IMG/VR virus record: IMGVR_UViG_3300036770_006296
Coordinates: 124,001-188,000 of that record
Strand: one strand, 5' to 3'
Length of the DNA: 64,000 bases
The notes under the pieces were generated by a model. The model worked only from the letters and a program-made list of their open reading frames with translations. It searched no databases and had not been told where the DNA came from. A program made the translations under genes and the position numbers. This document shows, one piece after another, positions 232-58,938 of this stretch (the first letter of the stretch is position 1; every line of letters starts with the position of its first letter).

Positions 232-239
232 GATATATA
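232..239 (+). promoter_or_regulatory. Putative late promoter GATATATA (representative of more than 20 copies)
   Basis: (G)GATATATA or AATATATA lies about 4-25 nt upstream of many starts, e.g. 1323, 10781, 13579, 17140, 27685, 28654, 29775, 40911, 49742, 58915 (+) and 7067, 31923, 42657, 52206 (-); analogous to the T4 late promoter TATAAATA. Confidence 0.65.
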
Positions 240-244
240 GATGT

Positions 245-1117
245 ATGAAGTATATTAAGCTATTTGAAAATTTTAATGAGCCTGAACAGTTCTGTGAGTA
301 TTGTTTAGAGCCTGTTGATCTTAAGCTTCTTTCTTATGAAGATAAAAGATCTTTTATAAACACAGGGTTATGCTCTAAGTGTTTAGCTGCAAAGAATGAT
401 AAAAAATTTAATCCCGAGATAGGTTTTGATGACGTTGATGATTACCCTGAAATTGGTAAGAGAGGCAGTGAATTAGATTCTGCAGCTCTTGATGAATTGG
501 AAAGCCTAGTGGAAAGGGCTATGAACTATCCGGTAACTAAGGATGGATATTTTAGGTTTTGGGCAGATTTCTTTAGATGGGAGGTTGCTAATAATTATTA
601 TGGGGGCACACAGTTTTTTACTTTTGAAGTAGGAGGTAAACCATCTAAGGATAGAAAAGAATGGATTTATAAGGAGTATTCTCCTAGAACTTTAAAAGCA
701 AGACCTGCTCTTAGAATAGGGGTTAAGCTTTTGGCTCTTAGAAAAAGATTTGCACCTGTATGGAAGGAATCTTCTGACTCTTCTTTTATGAGAAATACAA
801 ATCCAGACGTTTCACCGAATACTCCATACCAGGATGATCTTAACAGGCTTGAGACATCTATTAAAGGGAACGTAAGAGGAGCCGTTATACATAATTGGAG
901 TAATGCTGACCGTAAGGAATTCCATATGACACTTAGAAGAAATGCGTTGAGAAAAGTTGGATTGGCTAATAGACAAAAATTAATGGCTGATCTTGATTCA
1001 GGTGAATATTTTAAAAACCTTAGCTCTAGAGAACTTGAGGAATTAATGAATAATGCCTTAGATTCTGGTGATTTTAAAACTGTAGAGATTTTAAGAAAAA
1101 TTATGTATCCTGGATAG
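245..1117 (+). CDS. Hypothetical protein with CTS-like N-terminus, CxxC..CxxC zinc-finger-like motif and UVR-like C-terminal helix pair
   Basis: Start moved from 143 to ATG 245 (MKYIKLFENFNE) behind GATATATA; FCEYC...LCSKC; ELEELMNNALDSGDFKTVEIL. Confidence 0.8.
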   Translation: MKYIKLFENFNEPEQFCEYCLEPVDLKLLSYEDKRSFINTGLCSKCLAAKNDKKFNPEIGFDDVDDYPEIGKRGSELDSAALDELESLVERAMNYPVTKDGYFRFWADFFRWEVANNYYGGTQFFTFEVGGKPSKDRKEWIYKEYSPRTLKARPALRIGVKLLALRKRFAPVWKESSDSSFMRNTNPDVSPNTPYQDDLNRLETSIKGNVRGAVIHNWSNADRKEFHMTLRRNALRKVGLANRQKLMADLDSGEYFKNLSSRELEELMNNALDSGDFKTVEILRKIMYPG

Positions 1118-1141
1118 TAATCCTATTTCTTCTATAATGGT

Positions 1142-1314
1142 GGGGCCAGGCCCTAAAAATCATCATTGATTGGTTTTAAAAATTTTACGAGCGCGGTGGA
1201 ACAGGGGTTCCTATGGCTTCGCCTCGATTACATACCTTGCCCTCCGGGCTCCTAGATTTTTCTACAGATCTTAAAAACGGCCCTTGGGGCCTTGAGCCTA
1301 AGAATTCATTGATT
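1142..1314 (+). repeat. GC-rich degenerate intergenic repeat, copy B (1142-1229) and partial copy C (1286-1314)
   Basis: GGGGCC....CCTAA.AA(T)TCATTGATT at both 1142 and 1286; block similarity to 156-230. Confidence 0.55.
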
Positions 1315-1334
1315 AGATCTTGGATATATAAGAT

Positions 1335-1847
1335 ATGAAACATATTAAGCTATTTGAGGGTTTTAACGAGGAGCCTATTGTTATACCACAGTTTGTTAAG
1401 GATAGGTTAAGAGATCTGTGTCAGTACTTACGGTCAAGAGATTTATGGGGTTTGAGTATAGATTGTAATATTTATTATAGGGATGACGGGACCTGGAAAA
1501 GCGATTGGCCTATTAGAATTCAAAATAACGAGGGTAAATATGGAGTTTATATTCACTTTAATAGAACCCCAGAGAATTTAAGTGCTAGTGGGGGTATGTA
1601 CTCTGATAAGAATCCTCATATCTATTTTACTAAGGAGACTAATCCTCGTGAAGTGGGTGAGGATATTTATATCCCTTCAGACAATCCATTGGGTAGAGCG
1701 GCTTCTGGGACTCTATATAAAGGAACATATTTATCTGGACGTGGCTATATCAACCATGTAATTTCTAGAGCTTGCGGAGAGGATGAAGAATTTAAAAAAT
1801 TATTATGGGCTCTAATAACAGATATACAAGGAATTTTACCTTATTAA
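1335..1847 (+). CDS. Hypothetical protein, CTS-like N-terminus
   Basis: MKHIKLFEGFNEE; GGATATATA upstream. Confidence 0.8.
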   Translation: MKHIKLFEGFNEEPIVIPQFVKDRLRDLCQYLRSRDLWGLSIDCNIYYRDDGTWKSDWPIRIQNNEGKYGVYIHFNRTPENLSASGGMYSDKNPHIYFTKETNPREVGEDIYIPSDNPLGRAASGTLYKGTYLSGRGYINHVISRACGEDEEFKKLLWALITDIQGILPY

Positions 1848-1860: not shown

Positions 1861-2355
1861 ATGATCTTTGTTAATGTATACGAGTACTCTTCAACATCAC
1901 ATGGCGATTATATAGTGTATAGATTTTACTCTGGTGACACCGAGGATTCTGTGAAACGTATGATTATAGAGCATACCATCGATTCGTGGGATGGTGCCGG
2001 TGATGTAGTTGTAGATGCTTTGGAAGAATTGAAAGCATCTTTGAGTTTTAAGGAGATTGCAAGAGAGATAAATGATATCATTAATGATCTAGTTATTAGT
2101 GATAATGGACAATTACAGGAATATGATTTAATAATAGGAGATCCCACTTCTGATATTTCATATGGTTTAGATCTTTATGATGACTATAAGAGTGTAGATG
2201 ATAATGATAATTATCAGGGTGTTGATTTTTATTTCTATGGTGGATATGCTATTAAGGTACAGAAGCTATTTCCTTATGCCTATGATCTCATGAAAAATTA
2301 TGGTGTTGTTATAGACAATAAAATCTTTGACAAGATGGTTAAGGAGTTGCTTTAA
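1861..2355 (+). CDS. Acidic hypothetical protein
   Basis: 164-aa ORF in tandem array, AATATAT upstream. Confidence 0.75.
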   Translation: MIFVNVYEYSSTSHGDYIVYRFYSGDTEDSVKRMIIEHTIDSWDGAGDVVVDALEELKASLSFKEIAREINDIINDLVISDNGQLQEYDLIIGDPTSDISYGLDLYDDYKSVDDNDNYQGVDFYFYGGYAIKVQKLFPYAYDLMKNYGVVIDNKIFDKMVKELL

Positions 2356-2370
2356 TATATAATAAATTCT

Positions 2371-2880
2371 ATGAAACACATTAAGCTATTTGAAAGTTTT
2401 GGTATAAAATACAAGGTGATTGCAGTTAATATGGAAACCAGAGAAGCTGTGGGTGTGTTTCCTTCGTATCGAGATTTAGAGGATAATGCTAAAAAAGGTG
2501 CTTCCATGTTAAGTAGATTTGGAGCGGTAGAAGGAGCCGAAGATATCTATGATAGTCTTAATCCGAAAGCAACTGATCAGAGTTATTATTTTGTTTACCC
2601 TATGATAGATATACCAGATGATCATGACATTGTTGTTTGTAATAACTCTTCAGGAACTCCTGAGATATCTACTATGTCATCTAGGGATTTAAAAGAACCT
2701 GCTGTGGGTGATTCTTCTATGTATAATTGGTATACGAATGATGATGGTAGTGTTCATAATGTTTATTATAGAGTAGACAGAAATTCTGGAAAATTTGTAA
2801 TGGTGGGAGCGTATGGACATGTTGATAGAATGAGTCCAGATGAGATAGTTGAAATGTATAACTACGGCGCATCACTTTAG
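2371..2880 (+). CDS. Hypothetical protein, CTS-like N-terminus, internal KGASMLSRFG motif
   Basis: MKHIKLFESF; KKGASMLSRFG encoded at about 2491-2523. Confidence 0.8.
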   Translation: MKHIKLFESFGIKYKVIAVNMETREAVGVFPSYRDLEDNAKKGASMLSRFGAVEGAEDIYDSLNPKATDQSYYFVYPMIDIPDDHDIVVCNNSSGTPEISTMSSRDLKEPAVGDSSMYNWYTNDDGSVHNVYYRVDRNSGKFVMVGAYGHVDRMSPDEIVEMYNYGASL

Positions 2881-2906
2881 ATATATAGAAAAATAAATAT
2901 AAATAA

Positions 2907-3877: not shown

Positions 3878-3915
3878 GAATCATTTTTTTTATCTCTTTG
3901 AATTTTCTATCTTTG
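3878..3915 (+). promoter_or_regulatory. Putative early promoter (representative of 9 copies)
   Basis: GAATCATTTTTTT followed exactly 30 nt later by TATCTTTG (Bacteroidota -7 consensus TAnnTTTG); same geometry at 4281, 18581, 21274, 23699, 24651, 34561, 39148, 56810. Confidence 0.7.
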
Positions 3916-3929
3916 GTAAAAACACAGAT

Positions 3930-4280
3930 ATGGCTTTAAATTATGATCTTAGAGAGATAAAGAGTTATAAGAGACTTTTTGAAAAATCTACAGAAACTGG
4001 AGGATCCAAAATGAAGGATGTTCCAAGGACTATAGTCATGAGCACTATAAGTGTGGGGATGAGAGAAATCACCAAGGATAATTATAGAAAATTCTACAAT
4101 CGGCTTAGTCTGCTTGAGAATGTTTATGGGCATTTTTTCTACGTGAGGAGGAGGGGAGGTAAAATGATTCCTCGACCTATTACTTTAGGTGAAGTGGAGA
4201 GAATGATAGGACTGAAGACTAATGCTTCTGAAATTTCGAGAACTAAGTTCTTAAGTAGAATTGATAAGGATAAATTTTAA
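3930..4280 (+). CDS. Hypothetical protein
   Basis: 116-aa ORF directly behind early-type promoter. Confidence 0.75.
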   Translation: MALNYDLREIKSYKRLFEKSTETGGSKMKDVPRTIVMSTISVGMREITKDNYRKFYNRLSLLENVYGHFFYVRRRGGKMIPRPITLGEVERMIGLKTNASEISRTKFLSRIDKDKF

Positions 4281-7060: not shown

Positions 7061-7087
7061 TCAATTTATATATCCTTATTTTATAGG

Positions 7088-7891
7088 TCATGATTTTTTA
7101 GAATACCTATTATTATAGTTTTGAGCGTACTTATCTAATTCTTTAGGATTAGATTTTAAATATTGTACCTCCTTAGATGTTAATGGATATATCTCCTTTA
7201 TTAATTCCCCCATTTTTTTAGTAAGAGCCGGGGTGAAATCTTTTTGTGTTCTATACGGAGAAAAATAATCTATGAATCCCAGTAATTTTGCGGGGTGTTC
7301 TTTAGGATCTGTAGAAATACTAGGATCTGATATTTTTCTAGTAAGTATGAAAGTTCCGTATCCTTCTCTTCCTCCGTCTAGAGGGTTTGTGTTTCCCTCT
7401 ATTCCTGTCCATGTTCCTGCTGATTTATCTACCGAAAGAACTATTCCAGTATGGCCCTTTCCTGGATATGCTCCTTTTTTATCTCTGCTTAGATAGCAAA
7501 AGACCATGCCTGGTAATATTTTATTTGCGTCCATTCCTTCTGTATAGACTAATTTTTTACCTTTGGTTGTTTCCCAGTGATATTTAACCGCTGCGCTGCT
7601 TGGTATTTTACTAAGATCCTCTGGTTTAAACTTTGTTTTAGATAGAGCACCTTTAACGAAGCCAACACACCAAGGATTTCCTGGGGTTACATTTACTCCT
7701 TTTAGTAGGGTTTCGACTTCTGGTCCCTTATTGCTTCCCCTCGGCTTTTCCTCTGCTATAGAAGATTTAATTGCAGAATAAAAACTATCTATTAGATTTT
7801 TATTTTCTTGTGAGGTGTTTACAGACTCTTGGAGACTACTTTTTTGTAGATCATTATTTTTAAAATTCTCGAAAAATAATATATGCTTCAT
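7088..7891 (-). CDS. CHAP-family peptidoglycan amidase/endopeptidase, CTS-like N-terminus
   Basis: SNKGPEV...PWCVGFV (Cys), GHTGIV (His), IEGNTN; MKHILFFENF. Confidence 0.8.
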   Translation of the reverse strand: MKHILFFENFKNNDLQKSSLQESVNTSQENKNLIDSFYSAIKSSIAEEKPRGSNKGPEVETLLKGVNVTPGNPWCVGFVKGALSKTKFKPEDLSKIPSSAAVKYHWETTKGKKLVYTEGMDANKILPGMVFCYLSRDKKGAYPGKGHTGIVLSVDKSAGTWTGIEGNTNPLDGGREGYGTFILTRKISDPSISTDPKEHPAKLLGFIDYFSPYRTQKDFTPALTKKMGELIKEIYPLTSKEVQYLKSNPKELDKYAQNYNNRYSKKS

Positions 7892-8257: not shown

Positions 8258-8289
8258 GTGGTATATATTAAAAAAAGAATATATAAAGC

Positions 8290-9573: not shown

Positions 9574-10299
9574 ATGAGACATTTAAAATTATTTGAATCG
9601 TTTATAGCTAAGAAAAATCCTAACTATAAAAAACCTGAGTATGAATTTAAAGAGTTCTATAGGGCTTTTAAATCTTATCCAGAGTTAAGAGAGCTTCTCC
9701 CCTCGGAGATAGACCAAGATATATTTGATATTAGAGAAGATGGATTTGGGGGAGAGCCAAAATGGTTAGAAAACCACGTGGATCCGCCTAGCAAACCGGG
9801 CGAAATAACAACTGATGAACTCTTAGATATAGCTGAGGAAAGAGATCCAAGATTTGTTCCTTTTATTCTTTGGTGTCGTGAATTATTTGAATGTGGGGAA
9901 ATGGAAAAGATTCCTCTTGATTATTTAAGGAGAGGATTAGCTACTACATTTAAAAATCATGATTGGGATATTTTAGAGAAAGATCCGGATTATTTAGGTA
10001 AATGTGAGAGCGAATACAATAAAGCAATCGAAGCAGGATTAGACGACTATACCCTTGGTAATACATTAGGGCTTGTAAAAAAATATCCAGACATTGCTAT
10101 AAACATGGCTCAATTCTGGGCGACTTACATAAAAGGATCCATAGCACACTTTAACCGTGTTGAAGAAAGTGGAGGACAATTACCATGTACACAGTTTATA
10201 TTGTATAGAGGTAATTACTACACAATAGGAGGTAGAAGAAGAATGTTCTGGCACTTCTATAATCACATAGATCCCACAGTTTGGATAATGGAACAATAA
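9574..10299 (+). CDS. Hypothetical protein, CTS-like N-terminus, weak ParB/Srx-like C-terminal motif
   Basis: MRHLKLFESF; YYTIGGRRRM. Confidence 0.7.
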   Translation: MRHLKLFESFIAKKNPNYKKPEYEFKEFYRAFKSYPELRELLPSEIDQDIFDIREDGFGGEPKWLENHVDPPSKPGEITTDELLDIAEERDPRFVPFILWCRELFECGEMEKIPLDYLRRGLATTFKNHDWDILEKDPDYLGKCESEYNKAIEAGLDDYTLGNTLGLVKKYPDIAINMAQFWATYIKGSIAHFNRVEESGGQLPCTQFILYRGNYYTIGGRRRMFWHFYNHIDPTVWIMEQ

Positions 10300-10771: not shown

Positions 10772-10797
10772 GATATATAATAGTAAATAATAAAAAA

Positions 10798-11844: not shown

Positions 11845-12489
11845 ATGAGATATATTAAATCAATAGATCAATTTATAAACGAGCAGCTATTTTCTGATGC
11901 TAATAGATTTGCTAAATTACTAGGTTTAGGAGGAGGTGAGGCAGGTGCTTCTGGCTCAGACTCTCCCAGCGGACCAGTTTCCACTTCCCGAAATGACGAG
12001 GCATCGTGCCCAAACTACGACTGCTGGACTCACTTTGGTAAGGATGCTTTTTGGAACGGAACAAGTCAAATAGGAGGTAGAACAGTACCAAAGATAACAA
12101 TCCAAAAATCTCCAACATCTTTTAATATTAATTATGATGGACCTGCTTCGGGATTTCTACTTAAACATGCCAAAGGGGGTAAAGGAGATACTATCCATCA
12201 GTTATTAAATGTTCTAACATTAGAGCTTAATGAGTACCTTAAAACTATAAGTGTCAAGCCTGACGTGAAAAATATTAAGATGGAAATGGTGGGAAGTAAA
12301 TTAAGTGTTTCTGTTCCTCTTGTTAAGGTTCCCGAAGGCGTCCACTATCTTATAGCAAGAAGAGGAGGATTAGGTCATGGAGGGGATTTTACTGGACTAA
12401 TGAAATATAAAAAAATGGAAGGATACGAGGAGGCTAAGCACAAATCGGGTAGTCTCACAGAAAAGTTTGTAACGGTAATAAGCAAATAG
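11845..12489 (+). CDS. NEQLF-module protein 1 (unknown C-terminal domain)
   Basis: MRYIKSIDQFINEQLFSDANRFAKLLG then Gly/Ser linker. Confidence 0.8.
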   Translation: MRYIKSIDQFINEQLFSDANRFAKLLGLGGGEAGASGSDSPSGPVSTSRNDEASCPNYDCWTHFGKDAFWNGTSQIGGRTVPKITIQKSPTSFNINYDGPASGFLLKHAKGGKGDTIHQLLNVLTLELNEYLKTISVKPDVKNIKMEMVGSKLSVSVPLVKVPEGVHYLIARRGGLGHGGDFTGLMKYKKMEGYEEAKHKSGSLTEKFVTVISK

Positions 12490-12500: not shown

Positions 12501-13490
12501 ATGAAAGATCTTAAATATATTTTATTGTTTGAAAATTTTTCTAATGCTATTGATATTAATGAAAATGCTAAAGAAAATTTAAAAACATCCACTAAATTTT
12601 TAAGACTAAAGCCTAGATTTTTATCGAAGATCAAAAAGATCCTTGGTGTATCTAATGATAAAGAACTTGCTAAAGAAGACATCAAGCAATTTCAGAAAAA
12701 AAGAGGAATAAAAGAGGATGGTAATTTAGATCACAGAACTATTCTTTCCGGGTTAAAAGGTGAAGAACCAGATAACACTAATAATCTCTCCAAAGAAACC
12801 CCTACTATACCGGGTGAAAAATCTCCCATAAAAAATGCTAAAGCTAATGAGAATTTTATAAGTGAAGAGAACGAGACCGATTATTTAGCTAAATATACGT
12901 CGCAAAAAAAACAAGTAATAGGGTTCTTAAACTCGATATTTCCTTCAACGTTACCTTTTATAAATGATAAGGTTGATTCCGCTATCCCGCCTAAATTTGA
13001 AAAGTGCTATACAGTAAATTATCTAGTTTCCTCTAAGGAGGTTTGCTTTAGTGCGGGTCTTAGTGTTGAAATTAAATCAATAAAAATAAAAGACGCTACA
13101 TTCACTGCTCCCACAGAGTTTAAAGCAGATGGATATGTTAAAGGTAAACTAAAAGGGACTGTTGATCTTAAATTTTTTGCCCATATTATAGGGGAAAAGG
13201 GAATAGGCGATGATCTTTCGATAGATTTCGAGCAGAACGTTTGGTTTTATAAATTCTCTCAAATACAGATATATCCTCCATTATTAAACATATCAACAAA
13301 GATCTATGATCTTGGGGTTGTTTGGGCTTGGGTTTCTAATAATAATTTCAAAATAGAAAACTCATTAATTGGAACATATAAATGGGATCTTCCTATCCAA
13401 AAGAACGTAAACACATGTTTTGATCCTAAAGGAGGACCTTACATAAAAAATGTATCATCTTCGGATCTTAATAAATGGATATCCATATAA
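12501..13490 (+). CDS. Hypothetical protein, CTS-like N-terminus, PG-binding-like motif
   Basis: MKDLKYILLFENF; IKQFQKKRGIKEDGNLDHRT resembles PG_binding_1; flanked by the 78-bp repeats. Confidence 0.75.
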   Translation: MKDLKYILLFENFSNAIDINENAKENLKTSTKFLRLKPRFLSKIKKILGVSNDKELAKEDIKQFQKKRGIKEDGNLDHRTILSGLKGEEPDNTNNLSKETPTIPGEKSPIKNAKANENFISEENETDYLAKYTSQKKQVIGFLNSIFPSTLPFINDKVDSAIPPKFEKCYTVNYLVSSKEVCFSAGLSVEIKSIKIKDATFTAPTEFKADGYVKGKLKGTVDLKFFAHIIGEKGIGDDLSIDFEQNVWFYKFSQIQIYPPLLNISTKIYDLGVVWAWVSNNNFKIENSLIGTYKWDLPIQKNVNTCFDPKGGPYIKNVSSSDLNKWISI

Positions 13491-13574: not shown

Positions 13575-13605
13575 TTTCGGATATATAAAAAATATTAGAT
13601 AAAAA

Positions 13606-16393: not shown

Positions 16394-16427
16394 TGAGATA
16401 TATATTTTTATCTAATAAATAATCGAC

Positions 16428-17138: not shown

Positions 17139-17164
17139 AGGATATATAATATTATATTTATAAA

Positions 17165-18077: not shown

Positions 18078-18581
18078 ATGAAACATATTAAACTTTTTGA
18101 AAACTTTGATCCTATAAATGAATCCGACTTTGTTGTTGATAACTATAAAATGAGTGCAACAAAAGACGGTGAGATACAAGTAGTGGACACTGCTGCTAAT
18201 AAAACTTATGTTTACGTTGTTAGTGCAGGTGTAGTTGGGATAAAAGTTAAGGATTTCCCAGAGGGTAATTCTATTCTAGTTAGTGCTTTAGGTAAAAGCA
18301 TAACTAGTCCTCTTTCTAAAGAAGGGACAACAATTAAATCCATCAAGGAAAATTTAGGGAAGTCTAAAATAAAGTTCGATCTTCCTGGTGCATCACTCAC
18401 GCTGACATGTAAAACCGGATGTGAAAAATCTGCAGATAATGTTGCTAACATAAAAGTTACTGCGGAAGAAATGGATATAGATTTGAGTGATGTACTCGAT
18501 TCAGCAAAAGAAGCAGGGCACAATGTCATGAAAGCGGTAGAGGGAGGAGCAGATAAATTAAAATCGCTCCTTAAATGGTAA
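18078..18581 (+). CDS. Hypothetical protein, CTS-like N-terminus
   Basis: MKHIKLFENFDPINE. Confidence 0.8.
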   Translation: MKHIKLFENFDPINESDFVVDNYKMSATKDGEIQVVDTAANKTYVYVVSAGVVGIKVKDFPEGNSILVSALGKSITSPLSKEGTTIKSIKENLGKSKIKFDLPGASLTLTCKTGCEKSADNVANIKVTAEEMDIDLSDVLDSAKEAGHNVMKAVEGGADKLKSLLKW

Positions 18582-19275: not shown

Positions 19276-19671
19276 TTATCTTAATTCGTAGTAATCTATT
19301 CCATTCGTTATCACCCCATAGATGTTGTCATCTATTATAAAATTATACGCTCTTCCTATTATAGATTCGGGAAGTCTTGAAAGATCTCTTTTAGAGACAA
19401 GAACCGCTATAGGCTTTTCCCTCACGTATCCACTAGGACTCATTACTATCTCTCTATTTAATATTTTAGAAAATTGATTAACTGAAGCCATCGAAACAGA
19501 TCCTGGATATTTCCATTCCTCTTGGGATATTAAATAGGGATCAATTAAATCATCAATAGCAAAAATAAAAGGAGTTTTACCGGTTTTTGTAATCAGGTAT
19601 TCTAGCTCACTTCTTGTTATAGGAGCAGGATCTTTCGTAAAGAAATTTTCAAATAATATTAAATTTTTCAT
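19276..19671 (-). CDS. Hypothetical protein, CTS-like N-terminus
   Basis: MKNLILFENF. Confidence 0.75.
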   Translation of the reverse strand: MKNLILFENFFTKDPAPITRSELEYLITKTGKTPFIFAIDDLIDPYLISQEEWKYPGSVSMASVNQFSKILNREIVMSPSGYVREKPIAVLVSKRDLSRLPESIIGRAYNFIIDDNIYGVITNGIDYYELR

Positions 19672-19675
19672 TTTT

Positions 19676-21271
19676 TCATTTCTTTAATTTCCAGCTTATT
19701 GCTCCAGCCCATGAGTCTTCCAGAGTTCTGAGATCGAAAGGAATAGTAATCTTTCCTGTTGCACTACCAGAAGTTCCCATTACTCTGTACGTCCCCCTTT
19801 GTCTATCTAAGTCGTGGATTACTCCTTCGGAATTTCCTGAACTTACTCTATCCCCTATTTTTATGTAATCTAAATGTGGGTATTTAGAAGAGATTTCTTT
19901 CTCTGGCTCTTCCTCTACAACTAGTAAAATTTTATTTATTTTATTTTTTAATATTTTCTCTAGATCTGCTCTTATTTCCACTTCTGGATCCTGGGATATT
20001 TTTTTCAATTCATTTGTAGCATAGTCAAGTACTGAGTTCAATAATATTTTTTTCTCGCCAGCATTAATAATTATTGGGGTTGGTTCTTTTAATAAATAAC
20101 CTCCTGGTCTCCACATTCTTCTCTCTATGCTTTCCGCTGATGTTCCCTGCATATCTGCTACTGCATCTAAGAAAGATTTTTTAAGGAGATTAACTTTATA
20201 TCTTTCGTCCGGCTCGTATTTTTTACCGCTTGGTCCAAAATTGTATAGGGCGTAACAAAATATATTTTCATTTATTTTTTTTATTGATTCTTTGGCGATT
20301 TTAGAGAAGATGTCAGATCCTTTTAATCTTTCCTCAGTTATATTTTTTGTTATGTCTACAATGCCTGATAGAATTTCAACTATTTTATTGGAGATATCTC
20401 TTAGGTCTACTCCTTGATTTATATTATCGTCTATGATGATCATTTTTCCGAAGTTGCCAGCATTATCCCCTAATCCACAATGGTGTACAGCGCTTATAAA
20501 TGCTTCTGTTGCTGTGTTATATTTTGGTCTTAGCGAGCTTCTTATTCCTCCCATTTCCCCGGAGGATCTTATTTCAAAGCTAGGATCTTTCCCTTCTTGT
20601 GCTTGTATTGATAGATTAGCTATCATTCCATCTATCCATGGCTCTACCCTTCGCATAGTGGGTGAATATCTAGGTTTCTCGTCTCCTTTTCTGTGTATTA
20701 CTTTGCCAGTCCTTTTATTGATTACATCTTTCTCGTAGTATCCTCTGGGTATATCAAGCTCTGATTCTATTTTTCTGTTATATGAATCCCAGTCTACAGC
20801 CTGCATAACATCTGTATATTTTATTTTTGGTATACTGATTACTGTAGCATTTGGATAGATATTTAAAAAAGATCCCTCCATTTTCTTAACAAGATCCCTG
20901 CTACTTCCTATGGTTACTATGTAGTCTATATTTCCCTCTATATTATTTGTGAAGGTGTATCTAAAAAAATCCTCCAAGGTTTCACCAGGAGCCATCGAAA
21001 AACGGTCATCTTTTAAAGGATCCATTATAAATTTCTTAGCATTATCACCTTCCTCTGTGTCAGCAACATATGGAGTTCTTGGATAAAGACCAAAATATAT
21101 TTTTATATTTGCTATACCTCTTTCCGAAAAATTAAGATTGTTTGGATTTATTGTTTTTAGTAGCTCATTGGGGTTACTTGGATCGTTTTTTACAGATAAA
21201 TATGTTTTCCCCTCACTATCGTACCAAGCACCCTCGTTTATAAACTGTAGGAAATTTTTAAGATGATTCAT
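19676..21271 (-). CDS. Phosphoribosyltransferase-like protein with C-terminal SH3/KOW-like domain, CTS-like N-terminus
   Basis: MNHLKNFLQFINE; KMIIIDDNINQGVDL resembles the type I PRTase PRPP-binding loop; IKIGDRV..GVI..L...GTYRV. Confidence 0.6.
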   Translation of the reverse strand: MNHLKNFLQFINEGAWYDSEGKTYLSVKNDPSNPNELLKTINPNNLNFSERGIANIKIYFGLYPRTPYVADTEEGDNAKKFIMDPLKDDRFSMAPGETLEDFFRYTFTNNIEGNIDYIVTIGSSRDLVKKMEGSFLNIYPNATVISIPKIKYTDVMQAVDWDSYNRKIESELDIPRGYYEKDVINKRTGKVIHRKGDEKPRYSPTMRRVEPWIDGMIANLSIQAQEGKDPSFEIRSSGEMGGIRSSLRPKYNTATEAFISAVHHCGLGDNAGNFGKMIIIDDNINQGVDLRDISNKIVEILSGIVDITKNITEERLKGSDIFSKIAKESIKKINENIFCYALYNFGPSGKKYEPDERYKVNLLKKSFLDAVADMQGTSAESIERRMWRPGGYLLKEPTPIIINAGEKKILLNSVLDYATNELKKISQDPEVEIRADLEKILKNKINKILLVVEEEPEKEISSKYPHLDYIKIGDRVSSGNSEGVIHDLDRQRGTYRVMGTSGSATGKITIPFDLRTLEDSWAGAISWKLKK

Positions 21272-25589: not shown

Positions 25590-25790
25590 GTGAAAGATTT
25601 TTTAAAATATCTAGTGGTGTGGATAAGTGAGAACTTATCCATTCCTTTTTGGATAGTTGGACATATACATCTTACCATGAACATTTACGGGGATCTCTAT
25701 GAGGTCCTTTGTTCTTTAGGGATGAATATTATTGTTGGTGCTGGTTTTTACCTATCTTATAAAGAATGGAAAAAGAATAAAGATATATAG
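25590..25790 (+). CDS. Small membrane protein
   Basis: Two hydrophobic segments, GTG start. Confidence 0.6.
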   Translation: MKDFLKYLVVWISENLSIPFWIVGHIHLTMNIYGDLYEVLCSLGMNIIVGAGFYLSYKEWKKNKDI

Positions 25791-32955: not shown

Positions 32956-33051
32956 AGTTTGAATATATATTAGATGAAAGAGATATACGGCCTATTGATA
33001 TTCTCTATAGTTATTTTATTAGCAGGCTATATCAACATAAAAAAAGAAAAA

Positions 33052-33783: not shown

Positions 33784-33784
33784 A

Positions 33785-34561
33785 ATGAAACACATAAAGA
33801 ACATACAAGAATTTAATCACCTTTATGAACAGTTATTTGCTGCTGATATTGCAAAATTTAACAAATTGATGGGTATATCAGTGGAAGAAACCGGTATGGA
33901 GGAACCAAATATATCTCCTGCTGAAAATCCTTCTGGTTCAGGGTCAGCCTTTGCTTCTGTTGTTAAACTTAACACCAGTCAGTTAGATGAATATGGATCA
34001 ACTGTTGGGATTAGTGAAAAAGGAGATAATGCTCCATTACAGCAGCCAGCAAGAGGGCCTTTAGGAAATATAGTAAATTCAGCTTATGCTAACTTAAATG
34101 TTTCAACTAGAAAAATACCAGGGACTCTCGGAGGTAATTTAGGTTGTGCAGCAGCAGTTTCCATTATATTTTATAGAGCTACTGGATACGCAATAGCTGG
34201 TTCTGGAGCTATCACACTAGGCACCGCTCACATGTGGAACCATTTTGAAAAAGAAAGCAGAAATCCCAGCGGAGTTTGGCAGAAAATAACTAATTGGAAG
34301 ACTGACTCACAGCCTGGAGATATAATATTAACATCTAGAGGGTCTAAAGCAGGACACGTGGGTGTTGTTGTAGAGGGAGGTAACATTATATCAAATTCTT
34401 CTGGAGGATTCCAAGGAGATAAAAAAGGACAGATCGAGCTAAACTATAATCTAAACACATGGCAAAGTGTTGCTAATAGAAATCCACAGCAAACTGCTTC
34501 TTTTAGATATAAAGGACCCTATAAAAACACCTGGGGTAAAACGGAAAAACCAGTAGCATAG
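33785..34561 (+). CDS. NEQLF-module protein 3, NlpC/P60-like papain-fold domain
   Basis: Start moved to 33785 (MKHIKNIQEFNHLYEQLF); GGNLGCAAAVS (Cys), QPGDIIL, GHVGVV (His), ISNSS. Confidence 0.75.
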   Translation: MKHIKNIQEFNHLYEQLFAADIAKFNKLMGISVEETGMEEPNISPAENPSGSGSAFASVVKLNTSQLDEYGSTVGISEKGDNAPLQQPARGPLGNIVNSAYANLNVSTRKIPGTLGGNLGCAAAVSIIFYRATGYAIAGSGAITLGTAHMWNHFEKESRNPSGVWQKITNWKTDSQPGDIILTSRGSKAGHVGVVVEGGNIISNSSGGFQGDKKGQIELNYNLNTWQSVANRNPQQTASFRYKGPYKNTWGKTEKPVA

Positions 34562-40891: not shown

Positions 40892-40937
40892 AATTTAGGT
40901 TTTTATTTTGGGATATATAATGTAAAAATTATATCCC

Positions 40938-41750
40938 ATGATACTTAAATTAGGCTCCAAAGGTACAGCGGTAGAAAAACTACAGAATTTTTTAGGTGTA
41001 CCGATCAATGGAAATTTCGACGAAAGCGTAGATAAAGCTTTAAAAACTTGGCAAAAATCAAACGGATTAAAAGATGATGGTATAGCAGGACCAATCACTC
41101 TTAAAAAAATGGGTATAATCCTAGAATCCGATATCCCTGTTCCTACTTCTTCTTTTAAACTTGATAAGTTAAAAGGACATATTCCCGATTCTGTTATAGC
41201 TCAAATACCAGATACCGCAGCTAAATTTGGAATAACAAACGTGCTTAGACTTTCGCATTTTCTTGCACAGTGTGGGCACGAGTCTGGAGGTTTTAAGGCA
41301 GTATCAGAAAATCTTAACTATTCAGCCGATGGTTTAAAAAAGATATTTGGAAAATATTTCCCTGGTAATCTTAATGAGTCATATGCTAGACAACCAGAAA
41401 AAATTGCTGCTAGAGTTTACGGAAGTAGAATGGGAAATGGCGATGAAGCTTCCAAAGACGGATGGAAATTTAGAGGAAGAGGATACATCCAATTAACAGG
41501 AAAATCTAATTACGAAGCATTCGACAAATTTGTAGATGATGACATATTAGGTAATCCAGATTTAGTTGCAACCAAATACCCTCTAATGTCAGCAGCTTGG
41601 TTTTTCAATAAAAATGGTCTATGGACTATTTGTGATAAGGGCGCGGATGATGCAACGGTTACTGCTGTTACAAAAAGAGTAAACGGAGGAACTATAGGAT
41701 TATCTGATAGGATTAAACATTTTAAAGAGTATTATTCTTTGCTTAAATAA
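40938..41750 (+). CDS. Endolysin: PG-binding domain plus GH19 (chitinase-like lysozyme) domain
   Basis: LKLGSKG.AV..LQ...WQK.NGL..DGIAGP.T; HFLAQCGHESG; FRGRGYIQLTGKSNY; VTKRVNGG; behind GGATATATA. Confidence 0.9.
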   Translation: MILKLGSKGTAVEKLQNFLGVPINGNFDESVDKALKTWQKSNGLKDDGIAGPITLKKMGIILESDIPVPTSSFKLDKLKGHIPDSVIAQIPDTAAKFGITNVLRLSHFLAQCGHESGGFKAVSENLNYSADGLKKIFGKYFPGNLNESYARQPEKIAARVYGSRMGNGDEASKDGWKFRGRGYIQLTGKSNYEAFDKFVDDDILGNPDLVATKYPLMSAAWFFNKNGLWTICDKGADDATVTAVTKRVNGGTIGLSDRIKHFKEYYSLLK

Positions 41751-41775
41751 TATATACAGTAAAATAATTTATAAT

Positions 41776-42652: not shown

Positions 42653-42705
42653 AATTTATATATCTTTTTTAAGGCCACGAAGGAATATATAATACAACTA
42701 ACACT

Positions 42706-48510: not shown

Positions 48511-49392
48511 ATGCGGGATTTTAAAATAATTAACCGGATAACAAATACCTCTGATAATCTAAACCGATACTTCAATGAAATATCAAAATATGAATTATTA
48601 AGTGCTGAGAAAGAGGCTGAACTTGCTTTTAAAGCTAAGGCTGGTGACGAAAAAGCTAAAGAAGCAATATTAAAATCTAATCTAAGATTTGTTATTTCTG
48701 TTGCAAAATCGTATGTTTCTGGCAACTCCCCACTGGAAGATCTTATATCTGAAGGAAACAAAGGATTAGTAGAAGCAGTCGAAAATTTCGATCCGACTAC
48801 CGGATTCAAATTTATTAGTTATGCTGTTTGGCATATTAGGAAAAACATACTTGTATATCTTAATAATCACACAAGATCCATAAGAATCCCTTCTAACGTA
48901 AATAATGAGATGCGAAAATATCATGCTATAGAGGAATCTTTTATCTCTTATAATGGTAGGGAACCTTCAATAGATGAGATGCTAGAGATAATAGAAAATC
49001 CTGAATATGGGATCCAGATTTCTAACGCCACAATAGATACAATTAAAAACACCCCGTTATCTATTCCTCTCGAAAATTACGGAAAAGAAAATGACGAGAT
49101 TGGCTCTCCTCTAAGTTGGTTGCAATCATCTGAAAATAGTGATGGTATAACATTGAGTGACGATATCAGGAATATTATCTTGCGAGTTCTTTCAGAGTTA
49201 AAGCCTATGGAAAGGGAAGTTACTATTTTAAAATACGGACTTGGAGACTCAAAAGAACCTATGAGCTATAAAGCTATAGGGGAGAAGCTAGAAAAAACAA
49301 CAGAATGGGCTAGGATTATTTCTAAGAAAGCTGAAATGAGGATGAAGGCTATTATTAGGAGAAGAAAAATAAAAGAATTATTCTTCGATTAA
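48511..49392 (+). CDS. Second, divergent sigma-70 family factor
   Basis: NLRFVISVAKSY; DLISEGNKGL; FKFISYAVWHIRK; region 4 TTEWARII. Confidence 0.9.
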   Translation: MRDFKIINRITNTSDNLNRYFNEISKYELLSAEKEAELAFKAKAGDEKAKEAILKSNLRFVISVAKSYVSGNSPLEDLISEGNKGLVEAVENFDPTTGFKFISYAVWHIRKNILVYLNNHTRSIRIPSNVNNEMRKYHAIEESFISYNGREPSIDEMLEIIENPEYGIQISNATIDTIKNTPLSIPLENYGKENDEIGSPLSWLQSSENSDGITLSDDIRNIILRVLSELKPMEREVTILKYGLGDSKEPMSYKAIGEKLEKTTEWARIISKKAEMRMKAIIRRRKIKELFFD

Positions 49393-49706: not shown

Positions 49707-49768
49707 ATCTGCTAATTTAATAAATAAATTAAAAAGCAAAAGGATATATAAAGATAATAGAGACAAAA

Positions 49769-52199: not shown

Positions 52200-52214
52200 A
52201 TAAATTATATATCC

Positions 52215-52937: not shown

Positions 52938-52964
52938 ATAGCTATATATCGATCCTAGATATTC

Positions 52965-56787: not shown

Positions 56788-56848
56788 AATGTATTTATCC
56801 AACTCTATAAAAACATTTTTTTTAAACAAATGAATTTTCTAGGTTTGC

Positions 56849-57406
56849 ATGACTATAAAAAATATGAAAAGAAAAAAAGATTATCCAACTCTAATTCATG
56901 GCTCTATCTTTAGCCCTTGCTTTATGACAGAGGAAGAATTCGAGAATGGATATAAGTCTTCAATATTTTATATAGAAAAAGATTTCCGCGAGGAATACGA
57001 AAAACACATAGCAGCAATGTCTCACATTTCAAATATAGCAAAGAGCTACATTTTTAATAACTGGGAAAAGGTTAAGGATTGGAGTGATTTAGAAGTGGTT
57101 GTTAAACATGGGCCAACTGGAGAAAAAACATACTATTACTCTTACAAAGAAAAAATAAGAAAGAAAGAATACGGCAGAGGTATGATTTCGGAGCTACTTA
57201 TGAAGTCCGATAAAAAAAAGAAAAGAAACCAAAACCCTGTTTTAACTATAAATAATGTGGTACTAGATCCAACCGATGGCGATTTTTCAATCACTATAAA
57301 CGGAAAAGAACATTGGTGGATACAAGACGAGGCTGTTATAATTATAGCAGACTATATAGAAAAAAGATTAAAAAAAGAAAATAGCCCTGATGAAAAGGAG
57401 ATATAA
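56849..57406 (+). CDS. Hypothetical protein
   Basis: Behind early-type promoter 56810-56847. Confidence 0.7.
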   Translation: MTIKNMKRKKDYPTLIHGSIFSPCFMTEEEFENGYKSSIFYIEKDFREEYEKHIAAMSHISNIAKSYIFNNWEKVKDWSDLEVVVKHGPTGEKTYYYSYKEKIRKKEYGRGMISELLMKSDKKKKRNQNPVLTINNVVLDPTDGDFSITINGKEHWWIQDEAVIIIADYIEKRLKKENSPDEKEI

Positions 57407-57887
57407 AATGTATGGAATTGTTTGTAACAATATAAGTTCTTTACAGAAGGGTATCCAATTTGGTAAATCTATTGTTGAATATGCAACTAAGTATGGCAGC
57501 AATGACCAGTATAAAAAATGGGCTAGCGGGGATAAACAAGTAATGCTCTATGATGGTGGAAGTACTAATTCAAGAAGATTCGATGGAAAATATATTGGAT
57601 CAATGAACAGATACTTAGATGAGTTAGATAAACATAAAATAGAATTGGTTTCTTTTTATGAGAAAGATTTAGGAGACCAACTAACTTGTATTTGTTTATT
57701 ACTAGATGAAAGGATATGGGACACCGAAAAATTTAATGACTACGACGGGCCATTTATAGACAAGCATGGAAAAGAGCCTTCTCAGATTCCCTATAATTAC
57801 TGGAGATCAAAATTTGGTAACAGTGAAGAAGAAATAAATAAAATATTTTTTCTTAGAAAATTTTTTAAAGAATTAAAAATCTTATAG
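57390..57887 (+). CDS. Possible Pth2-fold (peptidyl-tRNA hydrolase-like) phage protein
   Basis: MYGIV...ISSLQKGIQ.G...KQVMLYDGG...FYEKDLGDQLTCIC; weak similarity recalled. Confidence 0.45.
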   Translation: MKRRYKMYGIVCNNISSLQKGIQFGKSIVEYATKYGSNDQYKKWASGDKQVMLYDGGSTNSRRFDGKYIGSMNRYLDELDKHKIELVSFYEKDLGDQLTCICLLLDERIWDTEKFNDYDGPFIDKHGKEPSQIPYNYWRSKFGNSEEEINKIFFLRKFFKELKIL

Positions 57888-57890
57888 TTT

Positions 57891-58910
57891 ATGTCAGAAA
57901 AATCCAATTCGGATGTTAGGAAAAGAATAAAAAATTTAATTAATATATCAAATAGAATGATGAAAAGAAACGAGAACAGATACGTTGACATGACAGATGA
58001 CGATGATGATTTAGGATTAGTTGATACGCATAAACATACCCAATGGTCAGTTCTTCAAAACGATCAATTTGCGCCATCATATGTTTCAGTTTCTAGAGTT
58101 CCTAGTGGTTTATATGAGATGAAATGGAACTCTCCTATGCAAACTTGGGTTTTAGCAAAGCAAGCTCTAAATATAGACGAGCTATATGAACTACCATCCC
58201 CTGAAATAGAAAGTATACTTAACGATATTAGGCTTTTTTGGAAAAAGAGAGGAGTTTATAGGGATTACAATTTTGTTCATAAGAGGGGTATACTTCTTTA
58301 CGGAGATCCAGGATGTGGAAAATCCGGAATCATACAGCTTTGTGTTAAAAGCTTAATAGAGGAAGAATCCGGAATCGTAATAAACATAAAAGAGGATGAG
58401 GATTTTAAAGCCTTCTTAGAATTTGTTCCTACTATAAGAACAATAGAGCCAGAAAGACCTCTTATTGTTATATTAGAGGATATCGACTCCCTAGCTGGAG
58501 AGGACCGGTACTCAACAACTAAACTCTTAAACATACTAGACGGTGTTAAACAGATAGAGAATGTTGTTTATATAGCAACAACAAATTACCCTGAAAAATT
58601 ACAGGAAAGAATTACCAACAGACCTTCCAGATTTGATAGAAGGTATGAGGTTCAAATGCCATCGAGAGAAATTAGAGAAGCATACATCAAAAACAAGCTA
58701 ACTGATGATGACTTAAAGACAATTAACATGGAGGAATGGCTAGACGCATCAGAGAACATGTCATTATCACATTTAAAAGAGATGGTGATTTCTGTTATTG
58801 TGATGGGAAAAGACTTTGATGAATCACTATCTGCTTTAGATGCACTCTCGGAGAGACCTAAAATTAAAGGAGGGAAAAGAAAATCTGGAATAGGTTTCGG
58901 AAAATCATAA
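57891..58910 (+). CDS. AAA+ ATPase (FtsH/BCS1-like module)
   Basis: RGILLYGDPGCGKS; IVILEDID; ATTNYPE; NRPSRFDR. Confidence 0.9.
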   Translation: MSEKSNSDVRKRIKNLINISNRMMKRNENRYVDMTDDDDDLGLVDTHKHTQWSVLQNDQFAPSYVSVSRVPSGLYEMKWNSPMQTWVLAKQALNIDELYELPSPEIESILNDIRLFWKKRGVYRDYNFVHKRGILLYGDPGCGKSGIIQLCVKSLIEEESGIVINIKEDEDFKAFLEFVPTIRTIEPERPLIVILEDIDSLAGEDRYSTTKLLNILDGVKQIENVVYIATTNYPEKLQERITNRPSRFDRRYEVQMPSREIREAYIKNKLTDDDLKTINMEEWLDASENMSLSHLKEMVISVIVMGKDFDESLSALDALSERPKIKGGKRKSGIGFGKS

Positions 58911-58938
58911 TGCGGGATATATAATCTAAGACTAACAA

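Follow-up and report, generated by a model that had tools for sequence, protein, structure and literature searches.

What links the many unrelated genes of a large uncultured phage of Bacteroidota that share the same few bases ahead of their starts and the same few residues at their N-termini? To answer this, we analyzed a 64,000-nt stretch of DNA (the window), which lies inside a 206.6-kb IMG/VR phage contig (G001), and compared it with related contigs. The initial annotation had described an AT-rich motif about 4–25 nt before many tagged starts on both strands, and had interpreted it as a T4-like late promoter forming, with the tag, a reusable expression-and-packaging cassette. Our analysis confirmed the observation, which is stronger than first described, whereas the interpretation received only partial support.

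The (G/A)ATATATA motif upstream of phage genes

The frequency of the motif relative to AT-rich background had been named beforehand as a point on which the observation could fail, and we counted it against dinucleotide shuffles. GATATATA occurs 22 times in the window, against 7.1 +/- 2.9 in the shuffles (maximum 15), and none of 100 shuffles reached the observed count. The first and last copies lie where the initial annotation had placed them. In the 86-kb record, 22 of 25 GATATATA copies and 11 of 18 AATATATA copies lie within 40 nt upstream of a same-strand start. Of the 103 genes called in the window, 25 have [GA]ATATATA within 45 nt upstream, 24 are tagged and 15 have both. In G001, GATATATA is the most enriched 8-mer upstream of genes (16-fold), and 40 of its 49 copies lie within 60 nt of a start, in sense. 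Independently, AATATATA is the top-enriched 8-mer (15-fold) in a complete 482-kb relative (G002), and the pattern is also found in other contigs. Sense orientation dominates, since 53 genes have the sense motif upstream and 14 have its reverse complement. The genome is 34% G+C and TA-repeats are common in intergenic DNA, but these data refute the possibility that the pattern is a chance product of AT-rich intergenic sequence. The features of the window are listed in the table.

Positions of the motif, the tagged genes and related features in the window
Position	Strand	Feature
232..239	+	GATATATA, 5 nt before tagged gene 245-1117 (MKYIKLFENF)
1323..1330	+	GATATATA, 4 nt before tagged gene 1335-1847 (MKHIKLFEGF)
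2354..2361	+	AATATATA, 9 nt before tagged gene 2371-2880 (MKHIKLFESF)
2880..2887	+	GATATATA, 19 nt before untagged lipoprotein-like gene 2907-3812
3878..3930	+	example of the contrasting early class: AATCATTTTTTT, a palindromic spacer, then a TAnnTTTG-type box, ahead of an untagged gene; others start at 4281, 23699, 24651, 34561 and 39148
7067..7074	-	GATATATA, 6 nt before tagged gene 6494-7060 (MSSLLKYRQFLNE)
7088..7891	-	tagged gene (MKHILFFENF) with no motif of its own; downstream of 7895-8257 in the same operon
8262..8269	-	AATATATA, 4 nt before tagged gene 7895-8257 (MRHLSNFNDFINE); one half of a divergent pair in a 32-nt gap
8278..8285	+	AATATATA, 4 nt before 8290-8757 (MIQHYEEFIAEKK, nearly the T4 CTS core YQEFIAE); other half of the divergent pair
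9574..10299	+	tagged gene (MRHLKLFESF), no motif of its own
10772..10779	+	GATATATA, 18 nt before tagged gene 10798-11538 (MKKHLKSFDDFSLNE)
11845..12489	+	tagged gene (MRYIKSIDQFINEQLF), within an operon
12501..13490	+	tagged gene (MKDLKYILLFENF) with a weak PG_binding_1 match
13580..13587	+	GATATATA, 18 nt before tagged gene 13606-14313 (MRHLRSFEEINE)
16397..16406	.	overlapping palindromic pair: AATATATA (-), 5 nt before tagged gene 16022-16393 (MIHIKLFEEH); GATATATA (+), 29 nt before 16434-16637
17141..17148	+	GATATATA, 16 nt before tagged gene 17165-18061 (MEKRVKSFTQFFES)
18078..18581	+	tagged gene (MKHIKLFENFDP), second gene of the 17165 operon
19276..21271	-	two tagged genes, 19676-21271 (MNHLKNFLQFINE, 531 aa) and 19276-19671 (MKNLILFENF); GATATATA at 21331-21338 lies 59 nt upstream
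24717..25577	+	RpoD-like sigma factor gene, a candidate reader of one promoter class
25782..25789	+	GATATATA, 21 nt before tagged gene 25811-27415 (MNYIETFESF, 534 aa)
27686..27693	+	GATATATA, 5 nt before tagged gene 27699-28382 (MKRIKLFENF)
28655..28662	+	GATATATA, 20 nt before tagged gene 28683-29075 (MRHIRLFENF)
29776..29783	+	GATATATA, 22 nt before untagged speD 29806-30177
30664..30671	+	AATATATA, 5 nt before untagged gene 30677-30985
31923..31930	-	GATATATA, 4 nt before tagged gene 31562-31918 (MIKKYKDFLSINE), followed by its paralog 31246-31560 (MLTKYKEFLKLYE); this pair is absent from two ~90% relatives
32962..34561	+	AATATATA at 32962-32969, then two tagged genes starting at 33052 (MKHLKSIDEFKIANEQLF) and 33785 (MKHIKNIQEFNHLYEQLF)
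40912..40919	+	GATATATA, 18 nt before untagged endolysin 40938-41750
41749..41756	+	AATATATA, 19 nt before untagged gene 41776-42384
42657..42691	.	divergent motif pair in a 53-nt gap: GATATATA (-), 4 nt before 42386-42652; AATATATA (+), 14 nt before histidine kinase 42706-44472
48511..49392	+	second RpoD-like sigma factor gene; a third lies left of the window at about -11925
49743..49750	+	GATATATA, 18 nt before tagged gene 49769-50596 (MRHLKSLEEFRIVNEQLF), whose body is related to the endolysin
52206..52213	-	GATATATA, 6 nt before tagged gene 51627-52199 (MKHISDFNAF)
52943..52950	-	GATATATA, 5 nt before 52215-52937 (MKYISYFKELNN, a weak tag variant)
58916..58923	+	GATATATA, 15 nt before untagged gene 58939-60003

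Among the genes named in the initial annotation as preceded by the motif, we confirmed the endolysin (PG_binding_1 and Glyco_hydro_19 domains), speD (AdoMet_dc) and a histidine kinase, while the cupin gene could not be identified. The motif has no -35 partner and no conserved position upstream of the G. Its distance to the ATG is bimodal (4–7 nt or 16–22 nt) in G001, and the distance is also bimodal in G002 and in other contigs. In addition, four divergent gene pairs have one motif per direction inside gaps of 32–82 nt. We also detected a separate class of host-type early promoters, 6 in the window by a strict pattern and 59 in G001, and none of them precedes a tagged gene, in agreement with the initial annotation. 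In relatives, the motif lies ahead of head genes: it precedes the protease-scaffold gene, with the capsid gene behind it, in the related contig G010 (GATATATA, 15 nt), the capsid genes of the relatives G003, G004 and G005 (AATATATA in two, TATATATA in one), the large terminase gene of G005 and the protease genes of G002, G003 and G005. In G001 it also precedes tail-fibre-like genes.

The proposal of a single-element late promoter analogous to T4 TATAAATA is thus well supported, although only by sequence and comparison, since no TSS data could be obtained. An alternative is that the motif acts at the RNA level, as a processing site or translation enhancer in polycistronic transcripts. It lies very close to start codons, many copies lie between co-oriented genes where read-through transcripts are possible, and Bacteroidota lack strong Shine-Dalgarno use and favour A/U-rich leaders. 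However, we consider this unlikely, because the bimodal spacing does not fit a fixed-distance ribosome signal, divergent pairs inside 32–53-nt gaps leave no room for any other promoter, the motif heads operons after long gaps and strand switches, and it does not overlap the early promoter class.

The N-terminal leader and its cargo

About 48 of 276 proteins in G001, or one in six, carry an N-terminal leader (MKHIKLFENF, M+HLKxFxxFINE); 44–48 N-termini match, against 0 of 1240 internal control windows. The tag family is much wider than the initial annotation recognized, with variants including MRHLSNFNDFINE, MNHLKNFLQFINE, MIKKYKDFLSINE and MIQHYEEFIAEKK. The motif is directly upstream of 31 of 48 tagged genes, against 22 of 228 untagged genes (odds ratio 17, p = 4e-15), and 40 of 48 tagged genes lie downstream of a motif along their operon. 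In G002 the figures are 52 of 72 tagged against 139 of 571 untagged. The exact 10-residue tag was found in 54 viral loci but in only one 2-kb MAG contig among 596 Gb of prokaryote genomes, indicating that it is virus-specific. The 735-kb relative LR756501 has no exact MKHIKLFE.

As the initial annotation had claimed, the first 24 nt of the neighbouring genes at 245, 1335 and 2371 are nearly identical, reading ATG AAR YAY ATT AAG CTA TTT GAR. All of them, and the gene just left of the window, use ATT and CTA, which are minority codons (31% and 18% genome-wide). Nevertheless, synonymous codons vary within the tag and orthologues in relatives keep it, showing that the leader is under protein-level selection. 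Tagged proteins share nothing but the tag and carry unrelated Pfam folds (CHAP, AAA/MoxR ATPase, GNAT, PAP2, OmpA and a DUF2201 metallopeptidase). The tagged genes could instead be one old, highly diverged paralog family, in which the leader is the only surviving trace of common descent and neighbouring identical leaders reflect recent tandem duplication. Tagged genes do cluster in arrays (245–2880 and 7–14 kb in the window; 147–160 kb and 457–470 kb in G002), some are true paralogs (31246/31562; 33052/33785/11845/49769, which share an extended NEQLF region) and neighbours share rare codons in the tag. This reading is nonetheless improbable given the diversity of the cargo, and homologues of the MoxR cargo in other phages align only from about residue 105–135 onward.

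The idea of a promoter-plus-tag module recombined in front of new cargo is only partly supported. The genes at -464 and 245 share about 110 nt of upstream sequence, with a GC-rich stem-forming element, plus the promoter and the tag, and the homology stops abruptly about 33 nt into the coding sequence, which also argues against common descent of the cargo. Tagged genes with their own motif are, moreover, scattered among replication genes. However, 17 of 48 tagged genes have no promoter of their own, most tags in G002 sit in promoter-less arrays and many untagged genes use the motif. The promoter and the tag are therefore two separable elements that often travel together, and not one obligate cassette.

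A possible capsid-targeting role

Relatives encode a T4-type Gp23 capsid protein and an S77 prohead protease fused to a scaffold of 9–14 tandem 14-residue repeats, each with the heptad [FY]xx[FY][LIV]xE. The same heptad is present in the tags, in 38 of 72 tagged against 6 of 571 untagged N-termini in G002 and in 13 of 48 against 2 of 228 in G001, with a background of about 0.4 per 1000 residues, and also in the T4 capsid-targeting sequence (CTS) MKTYQEFIAE (PMC8442874). [LIVMF]xE lies within residues 4–18 in 46 of 48 tagged proteins against 79 of 228 untagged, although the short form MKHIKLFE-x-F has only the LFE site and not the full heptad. T4-family proteases cut after Glu, and T4 internal proteins share only the leader (PMC5694885, PMC12373910). 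These data support, by analogy and now much more specifically, the packaging role suggested in the initial annotation, but cleavage and packaging are not shown, and a complex prediction gave no verdict.

Our best reading, to which we assign a probability of about 55%, is that two elements work together. In this view, (G/A)ATATATA is a single-element, -10-like promoter of the late class, probably read by host RNA polymerase carrying a phage-encoded sigma factor, and transcription probably starts about 5–7 nt downstream of the motif. Genes with the motif 4–7 nt from the ATG would then give leaderless mRNAs, and those with the motif 16–22 nt away would have a short A-rich leader. The N-terminal leader (M-[KR]-H-[IL]-K-x-F-E-x-F, often extended to F-[LIV]-N-E) would be a T4-type capsid-targeting sequence, greatly expanded in use, that is, a short amphipathic helix imitating one repeat of the scaffold. 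It would co-assemble with the prohead core and be cut off after the glutamate of [LIVF]-x-E by the S77 protease, leaving the cargo inside the head for injection, so that the phage probably makes and packages dozens of unrelated proteins. Proteins made late and carried into the next cell would explain why the two elements go together. Our analysis directly established the position, orientation and enrichment of the motif, its presence ahead of head genes in relatives, the statistics, protein-level conservation and viral restriction of the tag, and the heptad shared with the T4 CTS and the scaffold repeats, whereas the timing, the TSS, the sigma factor involved, cleavage, packaging and injection are inferences. 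No transcript or proteome evidence exists, and no cultured relative was found. G001 itself lacks the head module, and protease, scaffold and capsid are known only from relatives. No gp55-like late sigma factor was identified, the three sigma genes of G001 being full-length RpoD-like. In addition, one protein in six being packaged is far more than in T4, and some cargo, such as the MoxR-type AAA ATPases, is not an obvious ejection protein.

A tentative alternative is that the motif is a late promoter but the leader is a docking or regulatory peptide with another role, such as binding a phage chaperone or hub protein, membrane association of an amphipathic helix, or control of the stability or translation of late proteins. 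Many cargo domains act on the cell envelope (CHAP, OmpA, PAP2, PG-binding), which could equally fit a lysis-time or membrane role, and 17% of genes is a large share for capsid contents; the absence of the head module from G001 also leaves room for this reading. A second, unrelated short motif (KGxSMLxRFG) is reused at C-termini in this genome, indicating that short linear motifs are common here. On the other hand, the heptad shared with the scaffold repeats and the T4 CTS is hard to explain otherwise, the acidic residues argue against binding to anionic membranes, the synonymous variation argues against an RNA-level translation signal and the absence from host genomes argues against a general N-terminal optimum.

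Comparison with known phage systems

The closest systems are the T4 CTS and the polymorphic internal proteins Ip1-3 of T-even phages, in which a leader of roughly 10 residues at the extreme N-terminus is shared by otherwise unrelated proteins. The core heptad ends in the Glu after which the S77-type prohead protease cuts (FENFLNE, FNDFINE and YEEFIAE here), and the genes vary between close relatives. The main difference is scale, with about 48 of 276 genes here and 72 or more of 643 in G002, against 3 in T4 and some tens across all T-evens. Furthermore, the genes are scattered over the whole genome rather than held in two loci, the leader reads K-H-I-K-L-F-E rather than K-T-Y-Q-E-F-I-A-E, the scaffold is fused to the protease and built of tandem repeats that the tag resembles, the hosts are Bacteroidota and nothing has been tested experimentally. 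The T4 late promoter, read by gp55, gp33 and the sliding clamp, is likewise a single A/T-rich 8-mer at the -10 position with no -35 element, ahead of head, tail and lysis genes and of packaged proteins, but its sequence differs and about half the sites here lie within 4–7 nt of the ATG.

In the giant phages phiKZ, 201phi2-1 and SPN3US, dozens of head proteins are found together with a T4-related protease that cuts after Glu, and paralogs with identical N-terminal 15 residues have been noted (PMC5694885). No shared promoter-plus-leader arrangement has been described for them; their cleavage motif is S/A/G-x-E and their propeptides are long and not one common short leader. The PeSL cassettes of T4-type phages (Arbiol et al. 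2010, PMC2839356; Comeau et al. 2014, PMC4122927) are repeated composite regulatory sequences that flank variable ORFans, and are proposed as substrates for homologous recombination that moves genes together with their own expression signals. The -464/245 pair resembles them, but only one clear shared-module pair was found and no minicircles or breakpoints were mapped. PeSLs are early sigma70-type promoters with stem-loops and carry no coding leader, whereas the module shared here reaches into the coding sequence, and the 59 early promoters of this genome, with their palindromic spacer, are the closer formal analogue of PeSLs.

Genomic setting and features of the sequence

The window is part of an 85,958-bp virus record, which is contained at 99.99% identity in a 206,617-bp IMG/VR contig (G001; window coordinate = G001 coordinate - 124000) with a G+C content of about 34% and an estimated completeness of 81% according to CheckV. 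The genes were called with a heuristic caller of our own that under-calls small early genes, so the gene totals used here are approximate. Among the genes identified are three RpoD-like sigma factors, two histidine kinases and a response regulator, deoxyhypusine synthase, speD, a Dda-like helicase, tail-fibre-like proteins, a DNA polymerase and a replicative helicase, as well as a tmRNA. Nucleotide and protein searches of the phage collection found no close cultured phage, the best hits being uncultured huge phages (LR7565xx) and Lak phages, so that no virion proteome was consulted. Host-type promoters with a TAnnTTTG box, together with the single cellular hit of the leader described below, on a Cytophagales MAG contig, point to Bacteroidota hosts; the hosts are likely Flavobacteriia or Cytophagia. 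The positions of the features discussed in the text are collected in the table.

Positions of features in the window, in G001 and in relatives (coordinates are those of the window unless G001 or a locus label is given)
Location	Strand	Feature	Observation
150-231, 1130-1320; G001 123410-123535		GC-rich, strongly folding elements (GGGCC..GGNCC type)	Just upstream of three neighbouring motif-plus-tag genes
-464 and 245		Genes with shared upstream sequence and tag
1335 and 2371		Genes sharing the same rare codons in the tag
5594-6014	+	Phage-encoded tmRNA	Rfam RF00023, 85 bits; ARAGORN gives a tag peptide ending in LLMAA
8257/8290 and 42652/42706		Divergent gene pairs with one motif per direction	Two examples of four
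8290		Gene start	Begins MIQHYEEFIAEKK
12405-12494 and 13485-13574		90-bp direct repeat, 93% identical	Covers the last ~28 codons and the stop of two consecutive, otherwise unrelated tagged genes
22223-22348	+	tRNA match spread over 126 nt	Too long for a plain tRNA, may hold an intron or insertion; not called by ARAGORN
24717-25577, 48511-49392; G001 112075-112920		Three paralogous full-length RpoD-like sigma factors	31-38% identical to each other
29806-30177 and 31975-32955		speD (AdoMet decarboxylase) and deoxyhypusine/homospermidine synthase	2 kb apart, forming a polyamine module; the synthase is conserved in 20 viral contigs at 50-91% identity
42706-47626		Two-component-like block	GAF-PAS histidine kinase, a second kinase 59% identical in the catalytic part, and a receiver-domain protein, behind an AATATATA motif
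G001 about 85-122 kb (window -39000 to -1800), plus window 3878, 4281, 23699, 24651, 34561, 39148	nearly all on one strand	59 copies of the early-type composite promoter	Each ahead of a small ORF
Genes ending at 18061, 28382 and 29075		C-terminal K-G-x-S-M-L-x-R-F-G-hydrophobic motif	11 more in G001 outside the window
Gene starting at 56153	-	Same motif, C-terminal
2371-2880		Same motif, internal
G001 77253-81444 (outside the window)	-	Eight tandem paralogs of 115-231 residues	Followed by a tagged gene
L131 (locus of the relative G010), L109:8286-10328 (locus of the relative G002), L068, L069		Prohead protease fused to a scaffold-like region	9-14 perfect-period 14-residue repeats (YSEYLAENLDKNIS type)

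The upstream motif and its genomic distribution

To test whether the motif exceeds its AT-rich background, a condition on which the initial annotation had made its claim depend, we counted GATATATA in the window and found 22 occurrences against 7.1 +/- 2.9 in shuffled sequences. In G001, [GA]ATATATA occurs 79 times on both strands, and 53 genes have it within 45 nt upstream in sense, while only 14 have its reverse complement there. An unbiased count of all 8-mers in 60-nt upstream windows placed GATATATA first, with 16-fold enrichment and 40 of 49 copies, and the same analysis of the complete 482-kb relative G002 placed AATATATA first at 15-fold. The observation that this motif recurs ahead of tagged genes held. 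One detail was not confirmed, since the initial annotation had also listed a cupin gene among those preceded by the motif, and no cupin was identified by Pfam among the motif-led genes that we scanned.

The alignment of 33 sites on the motif showed information only at G-[GA]-ATATATA, with nothing conserved from -50 to -2, as in a T4-type late promoter, which is a single -10-like A/T-rich octamer without a -35 element. The distance to the ATG is bimodal, 4–7 nt or about 12–22 nt, in G001, in G002 and in unrelated contigs. Four divergent gene pairs have one motif per direction in gaps of only 32–82 nt, which leaves little room for any other promoter. A second, very different class is repeated 59 times, mostly in a one-strand block of small genes left of the window, and reads AATCATTTTTTT, then a palindromic spacer TAGAAnTTTCTA, then a TAnnTTTG-type box. 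It never precedes a tagged gene and formally resembles the PeSL promoter/stem-loop cassettes of T4-type phages. A sub-variant of this class (AAATCCTTTTTT ... CTTAG) precedes one sigma gene and may be a middle class. Each of the three sigma genes lies behind a different upstream sequence, which suggests a sigma cascade.

The assignment of the motif to late genes rests on comparison, since transcripts were not examined and timing was not measured. In G010, a 175-kb contig whose endolysin region is 72% identical in DNA to the window, GATATATA lies 15 nt before the protease-scaffold gene, and the T4-type capsid gene follows it directly. The capsid genes of the relatives G003 and G004 have AATATATA upstream and that of the relative G005 has TATATATA, and the terminase of G005 and the protease genes of G002, G003 and G005 have the same family of motifs upstream. 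In G001 itself the motif precedes tail-fibre-like genes, the endolysin and speD. The motif thus heads head, tail and lysis genes, as expected of a T4-type late promoter. In T4 such promoters are recognised by a gp55-type factor with gp33 and the sliding clamp; a search with the Sigma70_r2 model found only the three full-length RpoD-like sigma genes, and no search with a gp55 model was made. We infer that transcription starts about 5–7 nt after the motif, as for -10 elements generally, with the bimodal spacing as only indirect support; start sites were not mapped. The 4–7-nt class would then give leaderless mRNAs, and the empty range between 7 and about 12 nt fits the known poor translation of very short leaders, which was not tested here.

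The N-terminal leader and its proposed link to head assembly

A position matrix trained on the N-termini found 44–48 tagged proteins among about 276 and none in 1240 internal control windows, and the window holds 24 by the strict score and several weaker variants. The association of the motif with gene class, proposed beforehand as a check, was strong in G001, where 31 of 48 tagged genes have the motif directly upstream against 22 of 228 untagged genes (odds ratio 17, p = 4e-15) and 40 of 48 tagged genes can be traced to a motif along their operon. In G002, which has at least 72 tagged genes, mostly small and with the consensus MKHIKLFExFLNE, the direct association is not significant (10 of 72 against 44 of 571, p = 0.11), because the tags there sit in long promoter-less arrays, and only the operon-level comparison holds.

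Tagged proteins do not resemble one another beyond the leader, and they carry CHAP (2), MoxR-type AAA (2), DUF2201 metallopeptidase, GNAT, PAP2 and OmpA domains, although most have no match and one is related to the endolysin. In this respect the leader behaves as the T4 capsid targeting sequence (CTS) does, a short sequence at the extreme N-terminus of otherwise unrelated proteins; the folds of the tagged cargo were not predicted. Codons inside the tag vary synonymously (AAA/AAG, CAT/CAC, ATT/ATA, six Leu codons, with Lys/Arg exchanges), so selection acts on the peptide, and orthologues in ~90% relatives keep the tag while its residues drift. The exact ten residues MKHIKLFENF, back-translated, occur in 54 viral loci, many on contigs of 330–597 kb, and once in 596 Gb of prokaryote genomes. 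The exact MKHIKLFE pattern is absent from the 735-kb phage LR756501, where variant leaders were not sought, nor were leader variants and the repeat scaffold counted by profile across the IMG/VR huge-phage genomes. A different reused motif, K-G-x-S-M-L-x-R-F-G-hydrophobic, is usually the last 10 residues of the protein and occurs on tagged and untagged proteins, early and late (15 proteins), but is absent from G002. Its function is unknown and it may be a docking peptide.

The huge relatives, and the nearer relatives G010 and G007, encode a Gp23-type capsid protein, and G002, G003, G005 and G010 also have an S77 prohead protease. The protease is the N-terminal part of a 640–680-residue protein whose middle consists of 9–14 tandem 14-residue repeats of the type I-S-Y-S-E-Y-L-A-E-N-L-D-K-N, and which sits immediately upstream of the capsid gene, as the scaffold does in T4. 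Full-length matches occur only in the Al-Shayeb huge phages LR756500–LR756504. Each repeat holds the heptad [FY]xx[FY][LIV]xE, and the same heptad is present in 38 of 72 tagged but 6 of 571 untagged N-termini of G002 and in 13 of 48 against 2 of 228 in G001, over a background of about 0.4 per 1000 residues. The S77 protease, its scaffold and the Gp23-type capsid protein were not found on G001, which leaves it undecided whether this incomplete genome encodes them, and the relatives used for the head module are 50–91% identical in single proteins and are not the same phage. The T4 CTS, MKTYQEFIAE (PMC8442874), has the heptad too, and [LIVMF]xE, the kind of site expected for the prohead protease, lies within residues 4–18 in 46 of 48 tagged proteins against 79 of 228 untagged.

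In T4, the internal proteins join the scaffold core through the CTS, and gp21 then cuts after Glu (PMC5694885). We therefore read the tag as a CTS of this clade that imitates a scaffold repeat. The analysis itself demonstrates the placement, orientation and enrichment of the motif, the frequency and peptide-level conservation of the leader, and the heptad that it shares with the scaffold repeats and the T4 CTS, while late timing, the transcription start, cleavage, packaging and injection are our inferences. A complex prediction of the G002 protease-scaffold with the first 40 residues of a tagged G002 protein gave a score of 0.00 without controls and is evidence neither for nor against binding, and neither cleavage nor the presence of tagged proteins in mature heads was assayed. 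The principle of a late promoter without a -35 element and a CTS on polymorphic internal proteins is already known from T4. What differs here is the promoter sequence, the likely leaderless class, the leader sequence, the scaffold-repeat mimicry with the scaffold fused to the protease, the genome-wide spread and the scale, at one gene in six. In the literature that we searched, no paper mentions these leaders, or a CTS in huge phages.

A broader reading, which we hold tentatively and consider somewhat less likely than not (probability about 0.4), is that a clade of large to huge Bacteroidota phages (about 0.2–0.6 Mb, related to the largest known phages) has expanded the T4 internal-protein principle. 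In this view one sixth of the proteome, made up of enzymes and small proteins of unrelated folds, would be made late from a minimal promoter, partly on leaderless mRNAs, loaded into the prohead by a leader that mimics one repeat of a protease-fused scaffold, trimmed, and injected as a ready-made takeover and anti-defence arsenal, and new cargo would be recruited simply by acquiring the roughly 30-nt leader. If the leader is a capsid-targeting signal, it works as a sequence-only label for the injected proteome of an uncultured clade of very large phages, about 50 proteins here and 70 or more in the 482-kb relative, nearly all of unknown function and the most likely candidates for host-takeover and anti-defence proteins. 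It would also extend the T4 CTS rule across phyla, suggests how the rule works (mimicry of a scaffold repeat) and offers a compact tag for loading foreign proteins into capsids of Bacteroidota phages. The motif gives a simple way to split these genomes into early and late regulons, and the 4–7-nt spacing class predicts widespread leaderless late mRNAs in a Bacteroidota system.

Promoter and leader as proposed portable elements

The genes at -464 and 245 share about 110 nt of upstream sequence, consisting of a GC-rich, stem-forming element and the identical run GATATATAGATGT, followed by the tag, and similarity ends abruptly about 33 nt into the coding sequence. The GC-rich element is a local repeat limited to three neighbouring intergenic regions, not a genome-wide element, and may act as a terminator or insulator. 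In the left third of G001, tagged genes, each with its own motif, are dotted among replication genes that lack it. A comparison of relatives at one locus had also been suggested in advance, and at the deoxyhypusine synthase locus tagged genes are gained and lost between ~90% relatives, but untagged genes are too. With a single such pair and breakpoints that were not resolved, these observations do not decide whether the shared sequence is a mobile regulatory cassette of the PeSL kind.

Against a strict unit, 17 tagged genes have no promoter of their own, most G002 tags lie in arrays, and 22 untagged genes use the motif. The interpretation in the initial annotation is supported in part: a T4-like late promoter is well supported, but only by sequence and comparison, and a promoter-plus-tag module recombined in front of new cargo is only partly supported. 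The promoter and the leader are best seen as two portable elements that selection keeps together, comparable in spirit to the PeSL cassettes of T4-type phages (PMC2839356). The 90-bp direct repeat at the ends of two consecutive tagged genes may be a recombination scar or a shared C-terminal module. Outside the window, seven of the eight tandem paralogs in G001 begin MT(R/Q)E(E/A/K)FI..L and one begins MNVTKKFLGEIEELGY, which is a different reused N-terminus.
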